Of a stretch of DNA of 64,000 nt, positions 3,775 to 63,938 are shown in pieces (position 1 is the stretch's first letter; each line of letters begins with the position of its first letter). Made by a program: the position numbers and the translations under genes. The DNA lies in contig NC_135251.1 in the NCBI RefSeq assembly GCF_964204865.1, positions 6,634,001-6,698,000 of the forward strand, given 5' to 3'. This DNA is from Styela clava (Eukaryota). The notes below the pieces were generated by a model. That model ran no database searches. It was given only the letters and a program-made list of their open reading frames with translations, and was not told the origin of the DNA.

Positions 3775-4307
3775 AGTAATTACGGTATGGTACCTTATAT
3801 ACTAGTTACACTCGATAATCTGCAAGATGAAAATAACATTAAAGTTGAAGCGACCGCTCTTACTGCAATATATACCTACTCTGATGGAATCATATACTGT
3901 TTCACTGCAATACTTGAATACAGCTACACGGACTAACTCAAAGCTGCAATTAGGTATGGTACGGTACTAACATCAAAACGGTACTTTGGAAACTCACTCA
4001 TTTTATTGTATTCATTCCATGTATCCGTCAGTCTAGATTACGGCGCTGCTATATGAACAAAACGCAGGCTGCAAAAAAGAAAGTAGCGATACACGCTCGA
4101 CCCGATGGCGGCGATAACTGATACGGCTGAGTGACCAGTCAGTGAATTTTGTTCAACTGCGAACGAGCGTAAGATTTTGAGAGTATACATTAACCGTGCG
4201 TCAAGTGCTAACGAGGTCTTTGGTGAATCGCATTTAACGAGATTTCGCTATCACGATTCTGAGAGACACAGTTACGAGATCGTAAACCCGACTTTTTACG
4301 AAGTTTA

Positions 4308-5834: not shown

Positions 5835-8800
5835 CAGTGGCGTCGCGTGGTCATTTTGACAACCGGGGCAAGCTACTGCGGGACCAAGACACCCCCATCT
5901 ACGGGGACAGGATGAGCGCTGTAAGTTCTCCCATCATTTTATGAGTATAAAAATCATTCCATCGGTAACAACCAATCGGCAAAAGCGACAATTTTTAACG
6001 ATAAAAAAGTGTCTTTAAAACCGGTCCAAGTCAAGGGATTAATAAATATAGACATAGTTTATTTTGAAACCTCTTTCAAAAGGAAAGGCAATATTTACCC
6101 AGATAAATACAATGACATATTAACAGAAACTTCGGGAAAGCAGACAAAACCTAAAATAAGGTTTAAAACGTTACTATGAAGAAAGGAAAGGTATGCAAAG
6201 ATAAGGACATGCGTCGCTCACTCATAGATATATATGCTGCTAGACTTCTACTGCTTGAACATATATGCAACACGCCGCGGTTTCTTGGAAGCAAAATGCT
6301 CAATAACGCGCTGATTAAAGTCATGCATCCCAGAAATAACGTCTCTGTGAATGGATAAAACAGCCAAGGAATTTAATCTATCTTGCTTCATTGTGTTTCT
6401 GAGATACGTTTTAATACGCTTCAGCGTGCTGAATGTTCGCTCTGCGTCGTCGGAAGAAATAGGCGTCGTCAAAATGATGTCCAGAAATTTTGCAGACGCC
6501 GCAAATGTAGTTACTGGAGTGTTATCTATGAGGAACCCATAGAGCGCGCAAGTTGATGTGATGTTCAAAAAAGTTTGATTGGTGTATATACATCGCAATT
6601 CATTTTCCAATTTACCCACGTTTATCATGGGGTAAAATTTGGAGACAGTAGCCAACAAATGGATGGGAAATTGACGTGCAAATTGTGAAAAATTTTTGGG
6701 GTTCATCAAAGAGAACGCGGCAAGGTGTTCAGTGCGCAGACGATCGCCTATTTGATTCACCAGAATGTCACAGCATTCCATTGCAGACAAAATCAAACGC
6801 TGCGTTGTTTGCCCGCGGCGTAAAGAAGCACTCCATGTGTCGTCGTATTTTATTGTTTCCCGGATACGAGATACAACATCGCAGAAGTCTGAAATACACG
6901 ACTGCACAGACGCTCCATCCATTAGCCTTGACTGCAATGCGCCGTATATTACATCCAAGTGATAGAATGTTGTGGAGAAAAAAGCGAGAAAAAATGAAAA
7001 CTCACCATCTTCTAGCAGACGCTTTAGACCTGCGCCTCCCTCACAGAGCGTTCGTTCCAAACCGGAGAGCTCTGAATGCCATTGAAACACTCAATGAGCT
7101 CAGACCTAATTTCGGACACGCCCTGCACCACGCGTGATTGAAAGTTCCAACGTGTTGGTGCACAAGCTGGGAGACGGCGGCTACCTATCTGGCGAAGGAG
7201 GTCAGAGCGCTTCGGCGAAACGGAAACAAAAAATGAAGAAAACCCCGAAACATTTGCAAAAAATATACGGACTAGAGGGGTATCAAGACACATATTTTTA
7301 ATAACGAGGTTAAATTGGTGTGCATAACAATGTAAAAAATGCGCATGAGGAAAATCTTCTTTTATATAAACTTGAACATCATGTTTCGACCCACTCATGA
7401 CTGCCGTGCCGTCATAAGTTTGAGCTATCAATTTTGACTTCGCGTTGTAAGGCTGTAACACTTCTTTCAGTACAGCCGATATCCCGCAAGCCGTGCGTTC
7501 AACGATTGGTACAAAGCTGTGAAATCTCTCGGTAGGTTTACCATCTTTCACAAACCGAAAAATCAAAGCCAGTTGGGAAACGCACGTGATGTCAGTTGTC
7601 TCGTCAGACTGAATCAAAAGGAACTGGCAATTCTCAATTTCCAGAGCCAAATGTTGTAAATAAATTTTATACATTGAGTCGAGCAAATCATTTTGGATAT
7701 CCTTAGATGTCCCTTTCGAAACAGTTGCGGCATCAAGATGATCTCTCATTACTGTATCTAGGAATGCGGTGTATTCCACCATATCCAAAAATACCACTCT
7801 ATTAGAAGAGCCAGCCCGTTCATCGTGCCCACGGAGGGACAGCTCGTGACAACCAATGAACATCAAAACATCCATCAATCGACCGAGAACATGGCGGTTT
7901 TTCTCGACGTTTTGGTTGTGCCGACGAATAGAAACCGCGCGTGCTTCATCCAACTGTGCTGCAATATTAACATTTCCGAATGTTCGGTATTTTACTGCAT
8001 TGTCCAGATGCTCCATAGAAGATTGATGATCCCTGACACGCTCGGAAAGATGTTTAAGATCTCTAAAACCAAATTTTCACCAACGTGAGTCACGGGCGGT
8101 AGCAAAAAGTAGGCAATAAAAACAAAAAAGTGCAATTTTGTCGTCGCTGTAACACAACCATTCGTGTTTTTTATACCACGTTTCTGCGCAGAATGTACGC
8201 CGACGCTTTCCTCCGTCATGGGATTGTTCCAATGAACAATTTTTTGGTTGATAAGGCCCAAGACGTTGTACCTCTAATTTTTGTTCCAGCGGTAGCTGCG
8301 AAAACGGAGTGCAAAGCAGTGCATCAACCTTATTCATTATGAGGTCTAAGGCTAAGAAATGCGAAGCCGGAAAGAAGTGAGGAGCTCAAAAGAAATGTGG
8401 AAAATCGAAAGCAAATGGACTAAAGGTCTCTAACTGATTCAAATAGCAAAACAAGCGACAAAAACGAAGGCGAGGAAACTATCAACTCTTCAACCAACCA
8501 ACGAACGACAAGGAATGCGTGAATATGTCAACACGTTGTTGTAAGAAACGTCGGCATTGTGTCGTCATAATTTCGGGGCTAGCCCCGATCGGCCCCGATG
8601 ATTCAGTAAAAGAAACATGAAACAAACGAGACAAACGCGGCGAGTGGAAGATAAAAGAGAGAATACGATATACAATGAGCAACCGGGGCAAAATCGGCGT
8701 CGCCCCGTCGACGTTCGGCGAAGGCTTTGCGAGCAAAAAATGAGAATATGGCTAGTGTAGACAGTCTGTGCAACCGATATTGAGGTATTTTTCTAATATT

Positions 8801-13590: not shown

Positions 13591-16500
13591 TTAGCCGAGA
13601 CTGTCAGGAAGTCCACACCAAGCCCTCCAGACGCGTTGGAAACCCCGGATGAAGTTCCTAACGCAATTCCGGGAGACCGCCGTAGCGTCGGCTCCGATCA
13701 CACATAAAGCACGAAAAGCAGTCTGGTTTCCAACGGCGTAACTGCCGAGAGAACCAACCACAAATGCGTGCAACTCCACCACTTCGCCAGAGGCAAGAGC
13801 AATAGAGCGACATAACTCCTCATACTTCAAGTGCTTCTAACGGGCGTCATCCAATGGGGCCTCACCGTTGTCAAATGGACACACCACATACAGTACTACA
13901 ACCCGATTCGTCCCGATTTCCTCGATAATCAAATCGGGCCGCAGCATCTCAGCTGTTCTAGCGGTGTGCTCCCGACAAACTACGTCGACATCGCCCCTAG
14001 AAATACTGGCTGGGGGTAGGTGAGTCAAGATATCTTCCTGCACCAAATCGTGTCGCTCCTTGATGGTATTCATGACTGGACGACAGTGATTCAGCCCATG
14101 AGAAAGAGTCTCGTTTGCGTACCACACTTACTACAAGTCGCCCGTGGTTCCGCATATGCCTTAAACCGTCCACGAACGAATCGCAGCGGCAGAAGATTTA
14201 ATCGAGCTTTCAAAACCCACGAAATCTGAAACTGAGCGAGAGAGACAGACGTGCAGAGAAAGTTGTTTGAGCAACCAATCCGTGAATGATAGGAAACTGT
14301 CTTCCCCTGGTCCCGAAGCTCGCCCCATCTTCTCAACCAACGGTTATTGGACACGTGGTGCAGCACCCGAGGTATCTCTTGCCGCTCTCGATCAGGAGAT
14401 TGGTAGTGGTGACCGTGAAGTTCTCCTTCGCAGTGACAGCACAGCAAACAACGACACGGCGACTCATGGGCCACACGAGCCAATGCGCCGTTCATCTGGC
14501 TCAGAGGAGTGAGAAAGTCGATTACCAGGGCCTGCGTCGCCTTCTGGATTCGATAAAACCTCGCCACAGCCGAGCACGAGCAACCAAACGGGCTATAGTC
14601 GGAAGAATTCAAGGCCCTAAACTCATGGGTAACCCGAAATATGTCCGCTTCACGGGCAATTTTCGGGACGCCCTGACTCCCGACCGCAGTCGTGTAATGA
14701 AAAAATGGCTGACAAGTCCGGACTGGTAACCGAAAACGGTTCTCATCAGACAACGGATGCTCGCGTCCAGCCGCTCGAGGTCGCGCCGACGAAAATACCA
14801 AATCCGTAACTGGAAGAAGGGCTTAGGCAGAACAAACCTCTTCAGCGCCAACAGTTTTTGAAACGGAGTGAGCTCAGAAGCAAAGAGCCTCCGGAAAGAT
14901 TTTAAAATTTGGTTTAAAAACTCACTCCGTCCGACGATCCGGTATCCCATATCCTTGCCAATGTATCTCTAGAAGTCATCCCGGCTGAGAACAGCAACCC
15001 CACCGCCGTTGAGATGGAAAGGCTCACTGTCCGCGACCATCGTGCCTCCCAAACGAACCAATGCAAGAACAGGACATTTGGATGGTTTGAATTGCATTCC
15101 GGACCATTGGGTAAACTCGTCACATATTGAGAGTTGCGACTCCAACTGTTACCGCAACGACGCACGCAGAGCAAAATCGTCTGCGTAGCCCTGGTCGTTG
15201 ACGGTCACATCCGGCGCATATCGTAACTGGTAACCAACGTCCGGCAAACTCTTGACGCCCCGGAGAAGAACTTCCATCATCATATTAAAAATGCTTGCTG
15301 AGAGAAGGTATCCTTGACGGACTCCTCTACCAGAAATAATAGGGGACGTGTCACCATCCATAGTTTGAATGGTGAACACGTTATCCCTGTAAACGTCGGC
15401 AATTGTTTCCAACATGTACCCCGGTGCACAATAATGTAGCAGGACTTTGAGAATGACACCATGCCCTACCGATCCAAAAGCATTACGGATGTCAAGCCAC
15501 GCCACATAAAGATTACACTTATGTTTCTTGGCATCCGCAATGACCGAATCAAGCATGAAAACATGCTCGAAGACGCCTTCGGAAGAAACGAAGCCATTCT
15601 GTTCCGGAGAAATCACTTTCCCCTAGCTGCCCAAAACTGAAGGCGACGTGCAATCACGGCTGCATAAATTTTATACAGCGTGCGGCAGATTGCGATGGGT
15701 CTCCAGTTCCCGACGTCATTCATATTGCCCTTAAGGTCCTTAGGAACAGGAATTATTCTAGAGAAACGCCATGCTCTTAAAATACGTCGGGAACCCCTGC
15801 GGATTTCAAAGAGCTTGGAGAGAATTTCACCCCGTTGGTCAATGATTTTCCAAAATTCATAGGTGAGCCCATCTGGTCCCGGGAAAGTGCCAGACCGAAA
15901 AAAACTGCCGCCGCACTGACAGCCACGTCCTCCTCTACCACCCCTCAACTGAAGACCGAACCCCGGCCGATGACCGCGTTCGCCGTCCAATTAGTTTGAT
16001 TTGGCCCGTTTCTGGGCTGAACGGTTTGGGGGCAGGCGTTCGGCATTCTGGAAATTAGAGGCACCGGTAAACCAAAGTTCAAACTGCCCTCAAGATGGAC
16101 GAACGCCTCGCCTGGTGAGAACATCAAGACAATTCATCCACAAAGCGGGACAGTTTTTAACGCAGATCCTCCAGGTTTAGAACACCCAAAAAACGCACCC
16201 TCCTGAGCAGGGGCGGACACCCGGGGGGGCGAGGGGCGGTCTCCCCCCCCAATAATTTCGTAAAAAAAATTAATACATGTTGTTTCCGCCTTATAAAATT
16301 ATCATTTTCGAAAAGTACGATAGTCAAGCGCAATCAAACGATTAATAGTTACCGATATTATAACTGTTTTCTTACAATAATGTGGACCAAGAGCGCCTTG
16401 GAGCACCTAACATTTTCGTGAAACATGCGCGCCCGCACGGGTAATACTCCGTCTTCAAACGCACCGCCGATCACGCGCCACGGTTTTGCACAACTAATTA

Positions 16501-41702: not shown

Positions 41703-43288
41703 ATTATTATTATTATAATATTATTTTAATGGTGCTTATAACTGGCTTAGTTTTGTGCACCAGGACTGTGATATTAAGCGTTTGGTGCTCAAATGCTTCG
41801 ACCCGTTACGAGGACGTATTCTATAACAAATGATATAATTCTGGGGTTTGTTAGCAAATTGATAATATTCACGGGGCCTATATTCAGTTCTTTGCAATGA
41901 TTAAGTAAAATTGATCTTGGGAAGTTATAACGGGGACAATTCAATATTAAATGTTCGACGGTTTCGTTTTCCGTGCAGGTGTCGCAAAATCCACTTCCGT
42001 GGAGTCCAATTTTATGAAGATGAAAGTTCAGACGACAGTGGCCTGTTTGTAGTCTGAACAATAGTATTTCATATTTTCTAGATAATTTGCAGTAATTATG
42101 TACTTTAATCGATGGGAAGAATAATTTGAAATGTTGAGCTTTTTCTAGTGTGATATAATAGTTATTCCATTCCATTTCGCACTTCGCATTAATAATTGAC
42201 TTTGCTTCGTTTTTCGAGAAATTGATGACAGACGTTAAAATACTTCCGTCCATTGTTGCTTCTTTTCTAGTTTGTCTGCACTTTCGTTGCCAGCAATTCC
42301 AACATGTCCTGGGATCCACACGAAATCTACGAAAATATTTTGGTTCCTGAGGGAAGATAGAATAGTTTTAATTTTAAAAAACAACATATGATTAACAAAG
42401 TAAATTTTACTTAATCCTTGTAAAAGGCTCAGACAATCGGTCAAAATTAAAACACGTGACGGCCGATGCAAAGTTATCCAAAGCAATGCTCTGTACACGG
42501 CATAAAGTTCAGTTGTAAACGAACTTAATTTTTTGTCAAGTGTAAAAGATTTGGAGACGTCATACTTTAAAATACAAAATGATGAACCACATCCTGTATC
42601 CGTCTTTGATCCGTCCGTATAAATTAACAAGTATTGACTGTAATTCTCAGTAATATATTCATCACATATTAGTTTACTTATAGGTAACGGATCTGTTTTC
42701 GAAATAATATTCGCGAGCGACACATCAATATTTGGAAGTTCCATTTCCAAGGAGGTGACTGAAGAGGGGGTACACGGTTAACCGAAATTTGCTTGAAAAC
42801 ATCCGATGTGGTTAGCATGTTGAAGGTTTGAAACAAGGGTGACTTCGGGTAAAGCTCGTGCCATGTTTGTTCTATTATGTTTCTATTCGGATATTGCGTA
42901 ATCGATAAAATTTTGCTCTTATATCTCATGCAAGCCTGTCGGTGACGAAATTTAATCGGAATCTCTCTACAGGTAACATTTAGGCAGCAGATCGGGGTGC
43001 TGGGCAAAGCACCACAGCAAATACGAAGAGATTTATTTTGTAACAGCGATATTTTCCTAATTACATACTTTGGTGCAAAATAATAAGCTTCTATTCCGTA
43101 TTCAATTATTGACCGTATTAATACCCTGTATAATTTAAGCAAAGTTTCTCGGGAAGCTCCCCATGTTGTGCCTGTCAAAAGTCTCAACAGATTTAATCTT
43201 TTATCACATTTGTGTGTTACATGTTCTACATGAGCTTTATACTTCAATTTGTTGTCGAATATAACGCCAAGGTATTTATACTCAGATT
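41703..43288 (-). mobile_element. 5'-truncated I-group LINE (RT C-terminus, RNase H, CCHC) with (TAA)n tail
   Basis: Motifs YKYLGVIFD, YTDGSK, ELYAV, TDCLS, WIPGHVGIAGNESADKL and CDTC..ETVEHLILNCP. 14-bp TSD TTTGTTATACGTTT (41689-41702, 43289-43302). Empty site in the paralog at ~54496-54526. Confidence 0.95.
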
Positions 43289-61897: not shown

Positions 61898-63505
61898 GTT
61901 TATATTATATTGTGATATATACTGTGTGCGTACATAATGCATAAGGAAGTTAAGAAGTGATACTGGTTTTAAAAGTATTGTGAGTGTTAAAGAGAGCTAC
62001 ACAATTATTTGAAGTAATTTGATCTATAACTGTTGAATTTATTTTACGCCGAGTTATAGCATTTTGATGTCAATTACTAGAAATAATGTAAAATTCCACC
62101 ATTCAAAAGCACGGAACATTTAATTCTAAGTCAAGATTAAAAGCTTTTTACAACAACAAAAAAATACTAATTTATCATACCATGAATCATTTGCTAAACT
62201 AAACTAGGTCAAACTCTTATAACATTTTGTCGCTTAATATAATCACGGAAATCAGTTTTCAACCCTTGGTAACAGCAATTTGATATTCGATTATGCTGAT
62301 TTAACTCGATTAACGCTGATGTCATAAAATTATACAAATTTATGATTGGGGCCTTGAAATATGTTTGAAGTAGATAAAATTATTTGCTCATACTTAGGCT
62401 TTAAAACGAGAAGAATGCCATACGTCAGCAGTTTTGGCCTAACTTAGTTGAACAGTAAACACATAGTTAGATCGGATTTATGCGTTTCATGCATGGCGAT
62501 GTAAATTCCGATGGTCAAATATTTTACGAATCTACCAAACTTAAATTGAAACAAACAATATTATTTTATTTTGATAATAAAAGCTATTACGCATTCGTTT
62601 TATCAAAACTATTGCATCGTTTCCCAAGTGTGTAGCCGCGAACCCCAACTAACCCCTTTTCTTTCTAATGTTAACAAACAAACAAAAAAATTTCCTCATC
62701 ATACATAGCAGGTTTTCATCGTATGACACGCGTTTTAGATCCCGAAGACTCCAACTAAAAAAAAAGTTCTCCGGCCTCCGCTCGGACAAATCCCTTTTCT
62801 TTACATTCAAAATTTCTCGGCAACGCCCCTGTCGTTATATATGTAGAATTATTACACGTGGAAAGCTGTGCGGAATGAAAAATATTATAAATTCATGCTG
62901 ATGTTCTATGCTCATCAAATGCTTATGTTACATTTTTGATTCAATATACCAAAATGTAATTTTTTCCTATATGAATCCAAAATTTGTTTGCAGCAGACAA
63001 TTTTGTTTGTTCAATAAGGTCCAGAGACTGGTAAACAATTTATTTAGAAACCCATACTATTGCATTTAAAATAAACACAAATATATTCGATGTAAAATAG
63101 GGAAACACAAAATACTTTTTTATTTTGAGGTTATTGTTTTTGTACATTGGTAGCCTATTTTATATATGAATGACCTTGAAATATAATCATCTTCACTGAA
63201 GATGAATGCTAAAAAATTTGAAACATTTAAATTCGATACAGATAAACACTTTTGAAATAAAAGAACGTTTTGACTTCAAGAAGAACAGAAAATGCAATGA
63301 TTTATTGTGAACTTGAAATGAATTGTTTGATGTGTAGAAATTATTTTTGTTGTGTTTCTCATCTGCATATGCGGTGATTATAAATGTGCTAATTTGTTGA
63401 ATGAAAATTTTGGTTCACATTGCTGCCAATTCATTTTATTTCTGGCTCTCATATTTCATGCTCTCTTTTCAGATTATTTTTTCATGACTTTTTAACATAG
63501 TAATT

Positions 63506-63749
63506 ATGGCAAACGTGGATTTGTCTACATACCGCATTAGAATCGGTCTATTTCGAGGCGGTTGTAGAACTAAAGAGAAGGGGACACCGATTTCCACTTT
63601 ACAACTCTCGGATTATTCAACGGGACTGTCATTAGCAATTCGAACAGTCGTGTTTGCATTGCTTGCTGTTCACGGAATTGAAAAGAACCCGGGGCCGAGA
63701 TCATCGGATCAAAATAGTGTAAATGAAGGATCTAGTGTTGACCCAGAAA
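63506..63749 (+). CDS. Probable first coding exon of a gene whose N-terminal leader ends in a 2A-like motif (GIEKNPG/P); continues beyond the window
   Basis: Acceptor CTCTCTTTTCAG (63461-63472), ATG at 63506, MANVDLSTYRIRIGLF..RTVVFALLAVHGIEKNPGP, and donor GAAA|GTGAGT at 63749/63750 (phase 1). The unspliced frame runs to 63841. Confidence 0.7.
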
Positions 63750-63938
63750 GTGAGTTCACTTCTTACGTTAAAAATAAATATGCAACACGGAAGTTCAGTT
63801 CATTTTCAAAACCGCGATATCTAAAGATTTACGGATATTAGTTCAGATCGTTTTATTTGTCTTATATTGTATATAAATGCCAACTTTTCTGCACAAATTT
63901 TTCGATTCACTTTTGCAACCTTTGACTAAAGAGCTAAT

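Follow-up and report, generated by a model that had tools for sequence, protein, structure and literature searches.

A StopGo (2A-like) leader exon on a Death-NACHT receptor gene of Styela clava and its probable origin in a LINE ORF1 leader

The stretch of DNA analysed here, hereafter the window, comprises 64,000 nucleotides of the tunicate Styela clava (NCBI RefSeq assembly GCF_964204865.1, contig NC_135251.1, positions 6,634,001 to 6,698,000 of the forward strand). Close to its right-hand end lies the first coding exon of LOC120336611, a RefSeq gene annotated as 'uncharacterized protein'. The exon encodes an N-terminal leader with the octapeptide GIEKNPGP, a candidate StopGo (2A-like) core at which a peptide bond would be skipped during translation. 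An earlier sequence-only reading had taken this segment for a splice-bounded exon in which a retroelement-type leader was joined to a cellular gene, and we have followed that proposal through the transcripts, the genome and the protein relatives of the leader. Plain coordinates are those of the window; the downstream piece L015 is C2:6696001-6702000 in assembly shorthand, and a window coordinate equals the L015 coordinate plus 62000. The features in and around the leader exon are as follows.

63461..63472, forward strand: putative 3' splice acceptor (polypyrimidine tract plus CAG) of the sequence-only reading; unsupported
63480..63505, forward strand: minimal transcribed 5' untranslated region (5'UTR); contig X2 record 8 starts at L015:1480
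63506..63749, forward strand: leader exon, coding portion of 244 bases (81 codons plus 1 base), phase 1; start of the LOC120336611 coding sequence
63506..63574, forward strand: N-terminal conserved block MANVDLSTYRIRIGLFRGGCRTK, residues 1-23, common to the leaders of ORF1p of long interspersed nuclear elements (LINEs)
63626..63670, forward strand: hydrophobic helix-like segment LSLAIRTVVFALLAV, residues 41-55, mean Kyte-Doolittle value 2.3 over 15 residues; candidate signal or anchor and candidate 2A upstream context
63674..63697, forward strand: StopGo/2A core octapeptide GIEKNPG|P; skip predicted between codons 63 (G) and 64 (P)
63698..63749, forward strand: Ser/acidic linker RSSDQNSVNEGSSVDPE, 1 basic and 4 acidic residues
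63750..63755, forward strand: 5' splice donor GTGAGT; joint 1749>2993 (L015) in 4/4 runs

The ATG, the 63-residue leader, the hydrophobic stretch, GIEKNPGP at 63674-63697, the acidic linker and the GT donor, all of which had been named in the sequence-only reading, can be read directly in the DNA. The ATG at 63506 opens the frame MANVDLSTYRIRIGLF... (in a longer reading, MANVDLSTYRIRIGLFRGGCRTKEKGTPISTLQLSDYSTGLSLAIRTVVFALLAVHGIEKNPGP...), and 63 residues precede the G|P bond. The part before the hydrophobic segment is net basic (6 K+R against 3 D+E), and the product released by a skip is predicted to start with Pro64 followed by the linker (PRSSDQ...; PRSSDQNSVNEGSSVDPEM...). When the leader exon alone was searched against Pfam, 0 families were returned. 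Upstream of the coding part, the 5'UTR box TTAACATAGT is kept in the paralogous leader copies L001-L006. The shortest observed transcript also includes a mini upstream open reading frame of 3 codons (ATG ACT TTT TAA) at 63484-63495, 10 bases upstream of the main ATG; its start codon is present in paralogs L004 and L005 and absent from L002 and L006.

In an index of sequencing runs, nine runs hold 6-14% of the words of a 4.7-kb stretch of the gene, which is the share expected from exons only. Contigs from four runs (X1, X2, X4 and X6, from three studies) were aligned to L015, the gene was examined exon by exon, and the frames across the joints were derived by arithmetic; proteins of more than one exon were represented by the public models P0001, P0003, P0004 and P0065. 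The alignments gave these joints.

L015 1749>2993, forward strand: 4/4 runs; GT..AG in X1, the same joint 2 bases left in X2, X4 and X6; corresponds to donor 63749/63750
L015 3189>3570, forward strand: 4/4 runs, GT..AG
L015 3660>4616, forward strand: 4/4 runs; GT..AG placement from X1, the other three 1-2 bases left
L015 4809>5248, forward strand: 4/4 runs, GT..AG
L015 5327>5478, forward strand: 4/4 runs, GT..AG

The first joint bears out the predicted donor at 63749/63750 in contigs of all four runs and all three studies, and gives an intron 1 of 1,243 bases that ends beyond the window at L015:2992. Over the coding part of the leader exon (63506..63749), the contigs of runs X1 and X4 are 99-100% identical to the window. 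A contig of 965 bases (X2 record 8) extends from 63480 through later exons, four of which are in the listed pieces and the fifth in an unlisted gap, and a loose contig end after L015:5668 continues into the next exon. Exon 2, starting at L011:1993, preserves the frame of the Death-like open reading frame (ORF) at L011:1974-2192. In agreement with this arithmetic, the public model P0001 (XP_077966284.1, 'uncharacterized protein LOC120336611 isoform X2', 1118 residues), which has an N-terminus identical to the leader, reads ...DPE-M-SAITELD over the first junction.

The 5' side of the exon gave another outcome. At the acceptor proposed at 63472/63473, neither a joint nor a loose end was seen in the four runs, whose contigs do not reveal the true transcript starts. 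The contigs begin at 63480 (X2), 63499 (X4) and 63504 (X1), i.e. 7-31 bases 3' of that site; X2 also has low-depth contigs farther upstream, at 63069-63443, and it is possible that an upstream exon lies 5' of the leader exon. The acceptor CAG itself is replaced by TAT in paralogs L004 and L005. The description of the exon as bounded by splice sites is verified on its 3' side only.

Past Pro64 the frame stays open through the linker and is spliced in frame into Death-domain exons. Pfam recognised Death on three separate downstream exons (E 0.037, 0.0094 and 0.015), and the NACHT exon (L013:267-1478, 404 residues) matched NACHT at 1.3e-19 and NOD2_WH at 3.7e-5 and contains the P-loop GKAGSGKT. 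For P0001 as a whole the corresponding values were 9.9e-11 (Death) and 5.9e-19 (NACHT). The gene consists of the leader, three Death-like domains, a NACHT domain with a NOD2-type winged helix and a C-terminal repeat region, and on the strength of a NACHT NTPase with P-loop and winged helix we class it as an NLR. In the paralog P0004 the C-terminal repeat array appears LRR-like by eye; Pfam LRR was not reported. The expectation that no LINE ORF1 or APE sequence follows the leader also held. Over 40 kb of the forward strand we found no ORF1 body, APE or reverse transcriptase (RT) downstream, and where a LINE copy would continue from the leader into an ORF1 body and an APE-RT ORF2, this locus has an intron, Death-like exons and a NACHT exon.

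The S. clava genome contains 10 copies of the leader (L001-L010), 9 on contig C2 and 1 on C4. Across the 377 Mb of the genome the back-translated pattern GIExNPGP matches exactly 10 times, always within a leader copy, against 0 for the reversed control, so the occurrence of GIEKNPGP is more than chance. Searches of the same 377-Mb genome with the canonical D(V/I)ExNPGP gave 0 matches, and the looser (V/I/M)ExNPGP gave 13, of which 10 belong to the leader family and the other 3 have no long ORF; on these grounds a resident LINE with a canonical 2A was rejected as the donor of the leader. The sole other 2A-looking site found in the genome, at C14 ~9613966 (L027:3893-4150), lies in an open frame of 86 residues; it reads TSGFVELNPGP and has F where D or G would stand in the core.

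The count of paralogs also revealed what the leader is fused to: among the 10 copies, six are on NACHT genes and three on IRE1-like kinases. The six loci that match the NACHT exon best (100, 72, 71, 71, 70 and 50% identity; next 39%) each have one of the leaders L001, L002, L006, L005, L004 and L010 at 4.5-10 kb upstream, in the same orientation. At least 103 NACHT-exon matches are present in the genome, in clusters (C5 0.9-1.5 Mb, C8, C10, C1 31-32 Mb and others), and the 2A leader is found only with the six closest. Kinase bodies that match P0065 at 96, 80 and 73% identity lie 4.6-8 kb downstream of leaders L007-L009, and other genome matches reach at most 38%. These kinase genes, three in tandem, have the same 2A leader exon.

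C2:7074554-7084147, reverse strand: IRE1-like kinase gene with leader L007
C2:7115785-7123815, reverse strand: IRE1-like kinase gene with leader L009
C2:7151213-7158954, reverse strand: IRE1-like kinase gene with leader L008

Both public models of the kinases (XP_039254884.1, 'ire1-like', and XP_077966058.1) matched Pkinase at ~1e-30, and the closest solved relative of the leader-bearing kinases in the PDB is IRE1 (2e-19). Pfam found no KEN/RNase domain in them at E up to 1; the label 'IRE1-like' refers only to the kinase domain and the best PDB matches and implies no RNase. The remaining copy, L003, repeats the L002 leader 7.1 kb upstream of it: both lie on the minus strand, at C2:8875710-8875952 (L002) and 8882833-8883075 (L003). 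The two have identical open frames of 198 residues and identical flanks where compared, with a single NACHT exon downstream (8867770-8868945), and they may be alternative first exons or the result of a recent local duplication.

Nine copies were aligned, L003 being left out as a duplicate of L002. Residues invariant in all nine are T8, Y9, R12, I13, G14, F16, G18, G19 and K23 in the basic N-terminal block (TYRxRIGxFxGG), L43, A44, I45, F50, L52, L53 and A54 in the helix, and G57, I58, E59, N61, P62, G63 and P64 in the core, while the residue before the core is H in 8/9 and Q in 1/9. The phase-1 donor GT is kept in all 10 copies. Among the diverged NLR-type leaders, the ratio of nonsynonymous to synonymous divergence (dN/dS) was 0.15-0.38; the near-identical pairs L004/L005 and L007/L008 differ at only 3-4 sites, and their ratios are uninformative. 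Comparison of NLR-type with kinase-type leaders gave dN of 0.27-0.37 with synonymous sites saturated. Over codons 43-64, dN was 0.02-0.18 against dS of 0.19 to >2 or saturation (near-identical pairs left out, as they have no synonymous difference there). Within the core codons, synonymous differences occur at six positions among the copies, and the sole amino-acid change, K>R, falls on the free x. Purifying selection acts on the leader, and since the core codons vary synonymously and dN is low against dS, it is the peptide itself that is conserved, beyond the DNA.

In order to place the leader among other proteins, we compared a profile of the nine leader exons (A1) with 1.84 billion representative proteins at E <= 1e-3. 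This search gave 60 matches, 4 of which were S. clava models (E 1e-39 to 6e-35); matches to the leaders of ORF1p-like proteins had E-values of 3e-7 to 1e-3. Most of the non-Styela matches align profile positions 4-70 with their own residues ~3-70, i.e. with their N-terminus. P0005 is a low-complexity repeat protein without the core and is probably spurious, and P0028 and P0045 are multi-2A polyproteins. The consensus of the external leaders is MG(V/I)D(L/I)xx(Y/W)RxRIGxF...(S)L(A/C)IRxxLFxLLAxxG(V/I)ExNPGP, and similarity to the Styela leader covers the N-terminal block, the helix and the core. The N-terminal block is present in 46/55 external proteins; P0008, P0009, P0012, P0028, P0034, P0041, P0045, P0055 and P0057 are without it, some being truncated and some having variant residues. 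Named sources are the hemichordate Ptychodera flava (XP_070560282.1), whose four cluster members are spread over four chromosomes, and the bivalve Dreissena polymorpha (KAH3700602.1), and two external clusters have 9-10 members each on different large contigs. Two of the external proteins, P0021 and P0049, have the public labels 'tropomyosin Tod p 1.0102-like' (Ptychodera flava) and 'Sedimenticola sp.' metagenome-assembled genome protein, which probably reflect misannotation and animal-host contamination, respectively.

A second profile, A2, was built from 16 of the longer external proteins (at least 213 residues). Against the PDB, A2 matched LINE-1 ORF1p over the coiled coil, RRM and CTD (2ykp/2yko, E 3e-15), with further matches to 2ldy (4e-10) and 2w7a (3e-7). 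A hidden Markov model (HMM) of three resident S. clava ORF1s, which is independent of the leader, matched the post-2A bodies of 14/48 external proteins (E 3.5e-15 to 4.5e-4), the misses being mostly short fragments. Judged by these profile matches, the external leader-bearing proteins are LINE-1 ORF1p-like. The sequence-only reading had pointed to the N-termini of APE-type ORFs, and the relatives are leaders of L1-type ORF1p instead; its central idea of a retroelement-type 2A leader on a cellular gene is supported, in that a leader homologous to ORF1p-like N-termini is followed by Death and NACHT exons.

Within the S. clava genome A2 has 124 matches, more than 100 of which are ORF1 bodies at profile positions 65-278. 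Positions 3-72 of the profile are matched there by the 10 host leaders only (E 2e-17 to 2e-10). The six resident LINE loci that were fetched have an ORF1 frame followed by an ORF2-like frame, and the one that was scanned (L034) has Exo_endo_phos at 1.5e-9. Full-length resident ORF1 frames (L032-L034) have plain N-termini without the leader. The resident ORF1 at L034:1246-2238 also matches Baculo_FP_2nd (1.3e-11) and Baculo_FP (0.0019), in addition to A2.

As regards function, GIEKNPGP conforms to the expanded StopGo core (D/G/C/N)(V/I)ExNPGP defined in section 9 of PMC12846837. The sequence-only reading had cautioned that the canonical D is G here, and this caveat is largely lifted by the same paper: in RNA viruses p12 is G in 1,207/1,557 one-off variants, compared with 908 exact D matches, so that G at p12 is as prevalent as D, and functional D12G variants had been confirmed earlier (PMC12846837). 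Among the 2As tabulated in PMC11512398 is one of a picornavirus that ends in ...YGIEKNPGP. What follows from PMC4981915, PMC3708506, PMC12338488 and PMC13405545, and from PMC12846837 on upstream motifs, contexts and cellular genes, refers to passages of those papers. PMC12846837 describes an L-rich motif upstream of the core that closes with (A/G/S)G, its G being p12; the stretch upstream of the Styela core, LAIRTVVFALLAVH, is hydrophobic and conserved and resembles such L-rich motifs, with an atypical H at p11. Reasoning from conservation to activity, we predict that the leader directs skipping of the Gly63-Pro64 bond. According to PMC12846837, cellular genes contain StopGo/2A sequences rarely or not at all.

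Taken together, these results make it likely that an expressed immune-type gene has captured a retroelement-type StopGo leader as its 5' exon, the probable source being the 5' end of a LINE ORF1 gene. With the helix and the core in the ribosomal exit tunnel, the Gly63-Pro64 bond would be skipped; this would free a 63-residue leader peptide, and the receptor would be made separately as a cytosolic protein starting PRSSDQ. By analogy with the sea-urchin NLR 2A leaders, an unskipped fraction would retain the hydrophobic N-terminal leader and might enter membranes or the secretory pathway, or be made at lower yield. On the same analogy, two differently targeted products, as the sequence-only reading had envisaged, are plausible. 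Two gene families, with 6 NLR loci and 3 loci of IRE1-like kinases, now use the module as a portable 5' exon of phase 1. In a variant of this scheme, after PMC13405545, the 2A-like leader may be a dose limiter for death-fold proteins.

Several observations weigh against this interpretation and have to be set beside the other explanations of the locus. The leader could be a plain signal or anchor, or a nascent peptide that lowers yield without productive skipping, in which case the NPGP core would be kept for some other reason. The 15-residue hydrophobic segment (mean Kyte-Doolittle value 2.3) after a net basic part would suit such a role, and in the preprint PMC13405545 most 2A-like peptides of death-domain proteins fall into a 'reduced abundance' class and not into clean skipping. 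The unusual p11 residue points the same way: His, or Gln in one copy, stands before the core, where published L-rich motifs have A/S/C/G-G, and upstream context matters in that chimeric or variant 2A contexts are often inactive (PMC12846837, PMC12338488). However, all aligned copies, from two gene families with saturated synonymous sites, agree at the seven non-x positions of the octapeptide, which is stricter than would be expected of a plain signal peptide, and the octapeptide fits an experimentally supported expanded core (PMC12846837). Moreover, the leader has 2 Leu at -19 to -10, below the at least 3 tied to reduction (PMC13405545). We regard a leader without productive skipping as unlikely, although it deserves more weight than the alternatives that follow. 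That a dead piece of a LINE, or an ORF arisen by chance, was wrongly modelled as an exon is scarcely credible. The window is indeed rich in transposon remnants, but the exon is spliced in frame in 4/4 runs, its dN/dS is well below 1, the donor phase is kept in 10/10 copies, and no ORF1 body, APE or RT comes after the leader; an intact LINE insertion or a chance ORF was rejected on splicing, selection, donor phase and the Death/NACHT exons downstream. The runs themselves had been labelled 'RNA?' by guess, and we take them to be RNA because their joints read GT..AG.

The likeness to LINE ORF1p leaders might also be convergence, or a LINE lineage might have acquired the host leader exon. Polyphyly of short 2A sequences has been considered feasible (Roulston et al. 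2016, PMC4981915), and we found no leader-bearing LINE in S. clava, where the more than 100 ORF1 matches all start at A2 position 65 or later and the donor element was not found. Against this, the likeness spans ~65 residues in two blocks with equal spacing, at the extreme N-terminus on both sides, and the E-values are significant against 1.84 billion proteins. An HMM of the 24-residue N-terminal block alone, made from the 46 external proteins, gave 34.6 bits for the window leader (range 29.7-37.8 bits over the nine complete S. clava leaders) and 13.5 bits for the truncated copy on C4, while the best unrelated ORF among 4,807 reached only 10.5 bits. This test is partly circular, the Styela profile having served to find the external proteins, and the independent statistic is the set of library-wide E-values. 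For the external bodies, Pfam reported coiled-coil families only and no L1 ORF1 family in 10 proteins and then in all 16 of A2 at E up to 10, and they are assigned to ORF1 by the profile matches in the PDB and by the HMM of S. clava ORF1s. The direction from LINE to host is one that we infer from distribution only, because many taxa and copies are on the LINE side and one species is on the host-gene side: leader-bearing ORF1-like proteins are multi-copy in at least one hemichordate and one bivalve, and host-gene use was found only in S. clava, in 4/60 matches. Convergence or reverse transfer is in our judgement quite improbable, and capture from a LINE ORF1 is the explanation we prefer.

A more far-reaching version of capture from a LINE is possible, albeit doubtful as a whole. 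Here a LINE ORF1 StopGo leader would have been domesticated in a chordate lineage as a mobile 5' exon and shuffled onto two unrelated classes of intracellular sensors of immunity or stress, the Death-NACHT NLRs and the IRE1-like kinases, with the ratio of skipped to fused product as a switch. If this were true, that ratio would set the location or dose of the sensor and might respond to the state of translation during infection or retroelement activity, and the leader would be the first cellular 2A with an origin traceable by homology, beyond a short motif.

The nearest known counterpart is SpNLR2A of Strongylocentrotus purpuratus (Roulston et al. 2016, PMC4981915), in which a 2A-type core with a hydrophobic upstream part is located, as in the Styela gene, at the N-terminus of a Death-NACHT receptor. 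Passages of that paper describe a dual outcome, with the skipped product cytosolic and the unskipped product signal-targeted. Compared by features and not by sequence, the SpNLR2A leaders have 26 residues and the canonical GDVExNPGP, whereas the Styela leader has 63 residues before the bond and is hydrophobic from residue 41, and so departs from the short 26-residue cleavable-signal type. It differs further in the G at p12 and H at p11, in its extra N-terminal block, in having an exon of its own that is common to IRE1-like kinase genes, and in belonging to a tunicate. Among retroelements, LINE ORF1p-like proteins of limpet and ticks with a coiled coil-RRM-CTD body (preprint PMC13405545) have an N-terminal 2A before the coiled coil, as Styela has one before the first domain; in Styela, however, an intron and host immune domains follow, and no ORF1 body or ORF2. 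The APE-type non-LTR elements Rex1, Crack, L2, CR1 and Ingi (Odon et al. 2013, PMC3708506) likewise represent N-terminal StopGo sequences of retroelements in marine invertebrates, but there the 2A, sought with GD(V/I)ExNPGP, is on ORF2p or single-ORF elements, whereas the Styela relatives are ORF1p leaders. The passages of PMC3708506 include no tunicate among the 2A-bearing APE-type elements.

Viral class B 2As (Rao et al. 2025, PMC12338488) and the L-rich 'motif 5' (PMC12846837) have in common with the Styela leader the core G(V/I)ExNPGP and a Leu-rich upstream stretch ending xG at p12. Membership of class B, as defined in PMC12338488, was rejected, the Trp at -16 being missing (the leader has V16 and F15). 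The viral 2As with G at p12 are internal polyprotein sites, whereas the Styela 2A is the N-terminal leader of a cellular gene. Sea-urchin NLR 2A leaders, 2A sequences on death-domain and ORF1p-like proteins and the RefSeq gene model are already known, and 2A-like peptides have been noted in death-domain proteins of 'four unrelated marine species' (PMC13405545, in part). In the main-text literature searched, we met no tunicate case, two-block 64-residue leader, homology between host-gene and LINE ORF1p leaders, or use on an IRE1-like kinase; S. clava entries may be present in the supplementary tables of PMC13405545 and PMC12338488. The main text of PMC13405545 has 0 occurrences of 'Styela' and 'tunicat', no paper with both 'Styela clava' and '2A-like' was found among the listed literature matches, and a literature search for octapeptide strings returned only the picornavirus table of PMC11512398.

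For the sea-urchin NLRs, the one cellular case that has been studied, the authors of the SpNLR2A study regarded speculation on origin as fruitless, the sequences being too short (PMC4981915, in part). The Styela leader, with two blocks over ~65 residues, is long enough for homology to LINE ORF1p leaders, which makes the question of origin testable. With this leader, cellular use of 2A now includes a tunicate. Its presence as one exon on two sensor families is a clear case of a recoding module spread by exon shuffling, and it provides a natural context with G at p12 and H at p11 that is open to assay. Tunicates are among the closest invertebrate relatives of vertebrates.

Other observations concern the intron L015:3660-4616 and the remainder of the window. 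Rfam had 0 matches on the 6-kb gene start. At L015:3801-4400 (C2:6699801-6700400), within that intron, contigs are very deep in 4/4 runs, with a summed word depth of up to 2,358 and loose ends at 3828, 3928 and 4178; Rfam finds nothing there, and the segment looks like a repeat transcribed from many places. At the left-hand end of the window, a forward-strand ORF of 513 residues (28-1569) combines a Pif1 2B domain with a UvrD-like helicase C-terminus and an Exo_endo_phos endonuclease, and looks like a Helitron/Helentron-type transposon protein. Transposon remnants on the reverse strand comprise a hAT transposase (DUF4371 plus hAT dimerisation domain) at 6248-8016, a reverse-transcriptase fragment at 15149-15616, and RNase H and zf-RVT fragments at 41789-43247.

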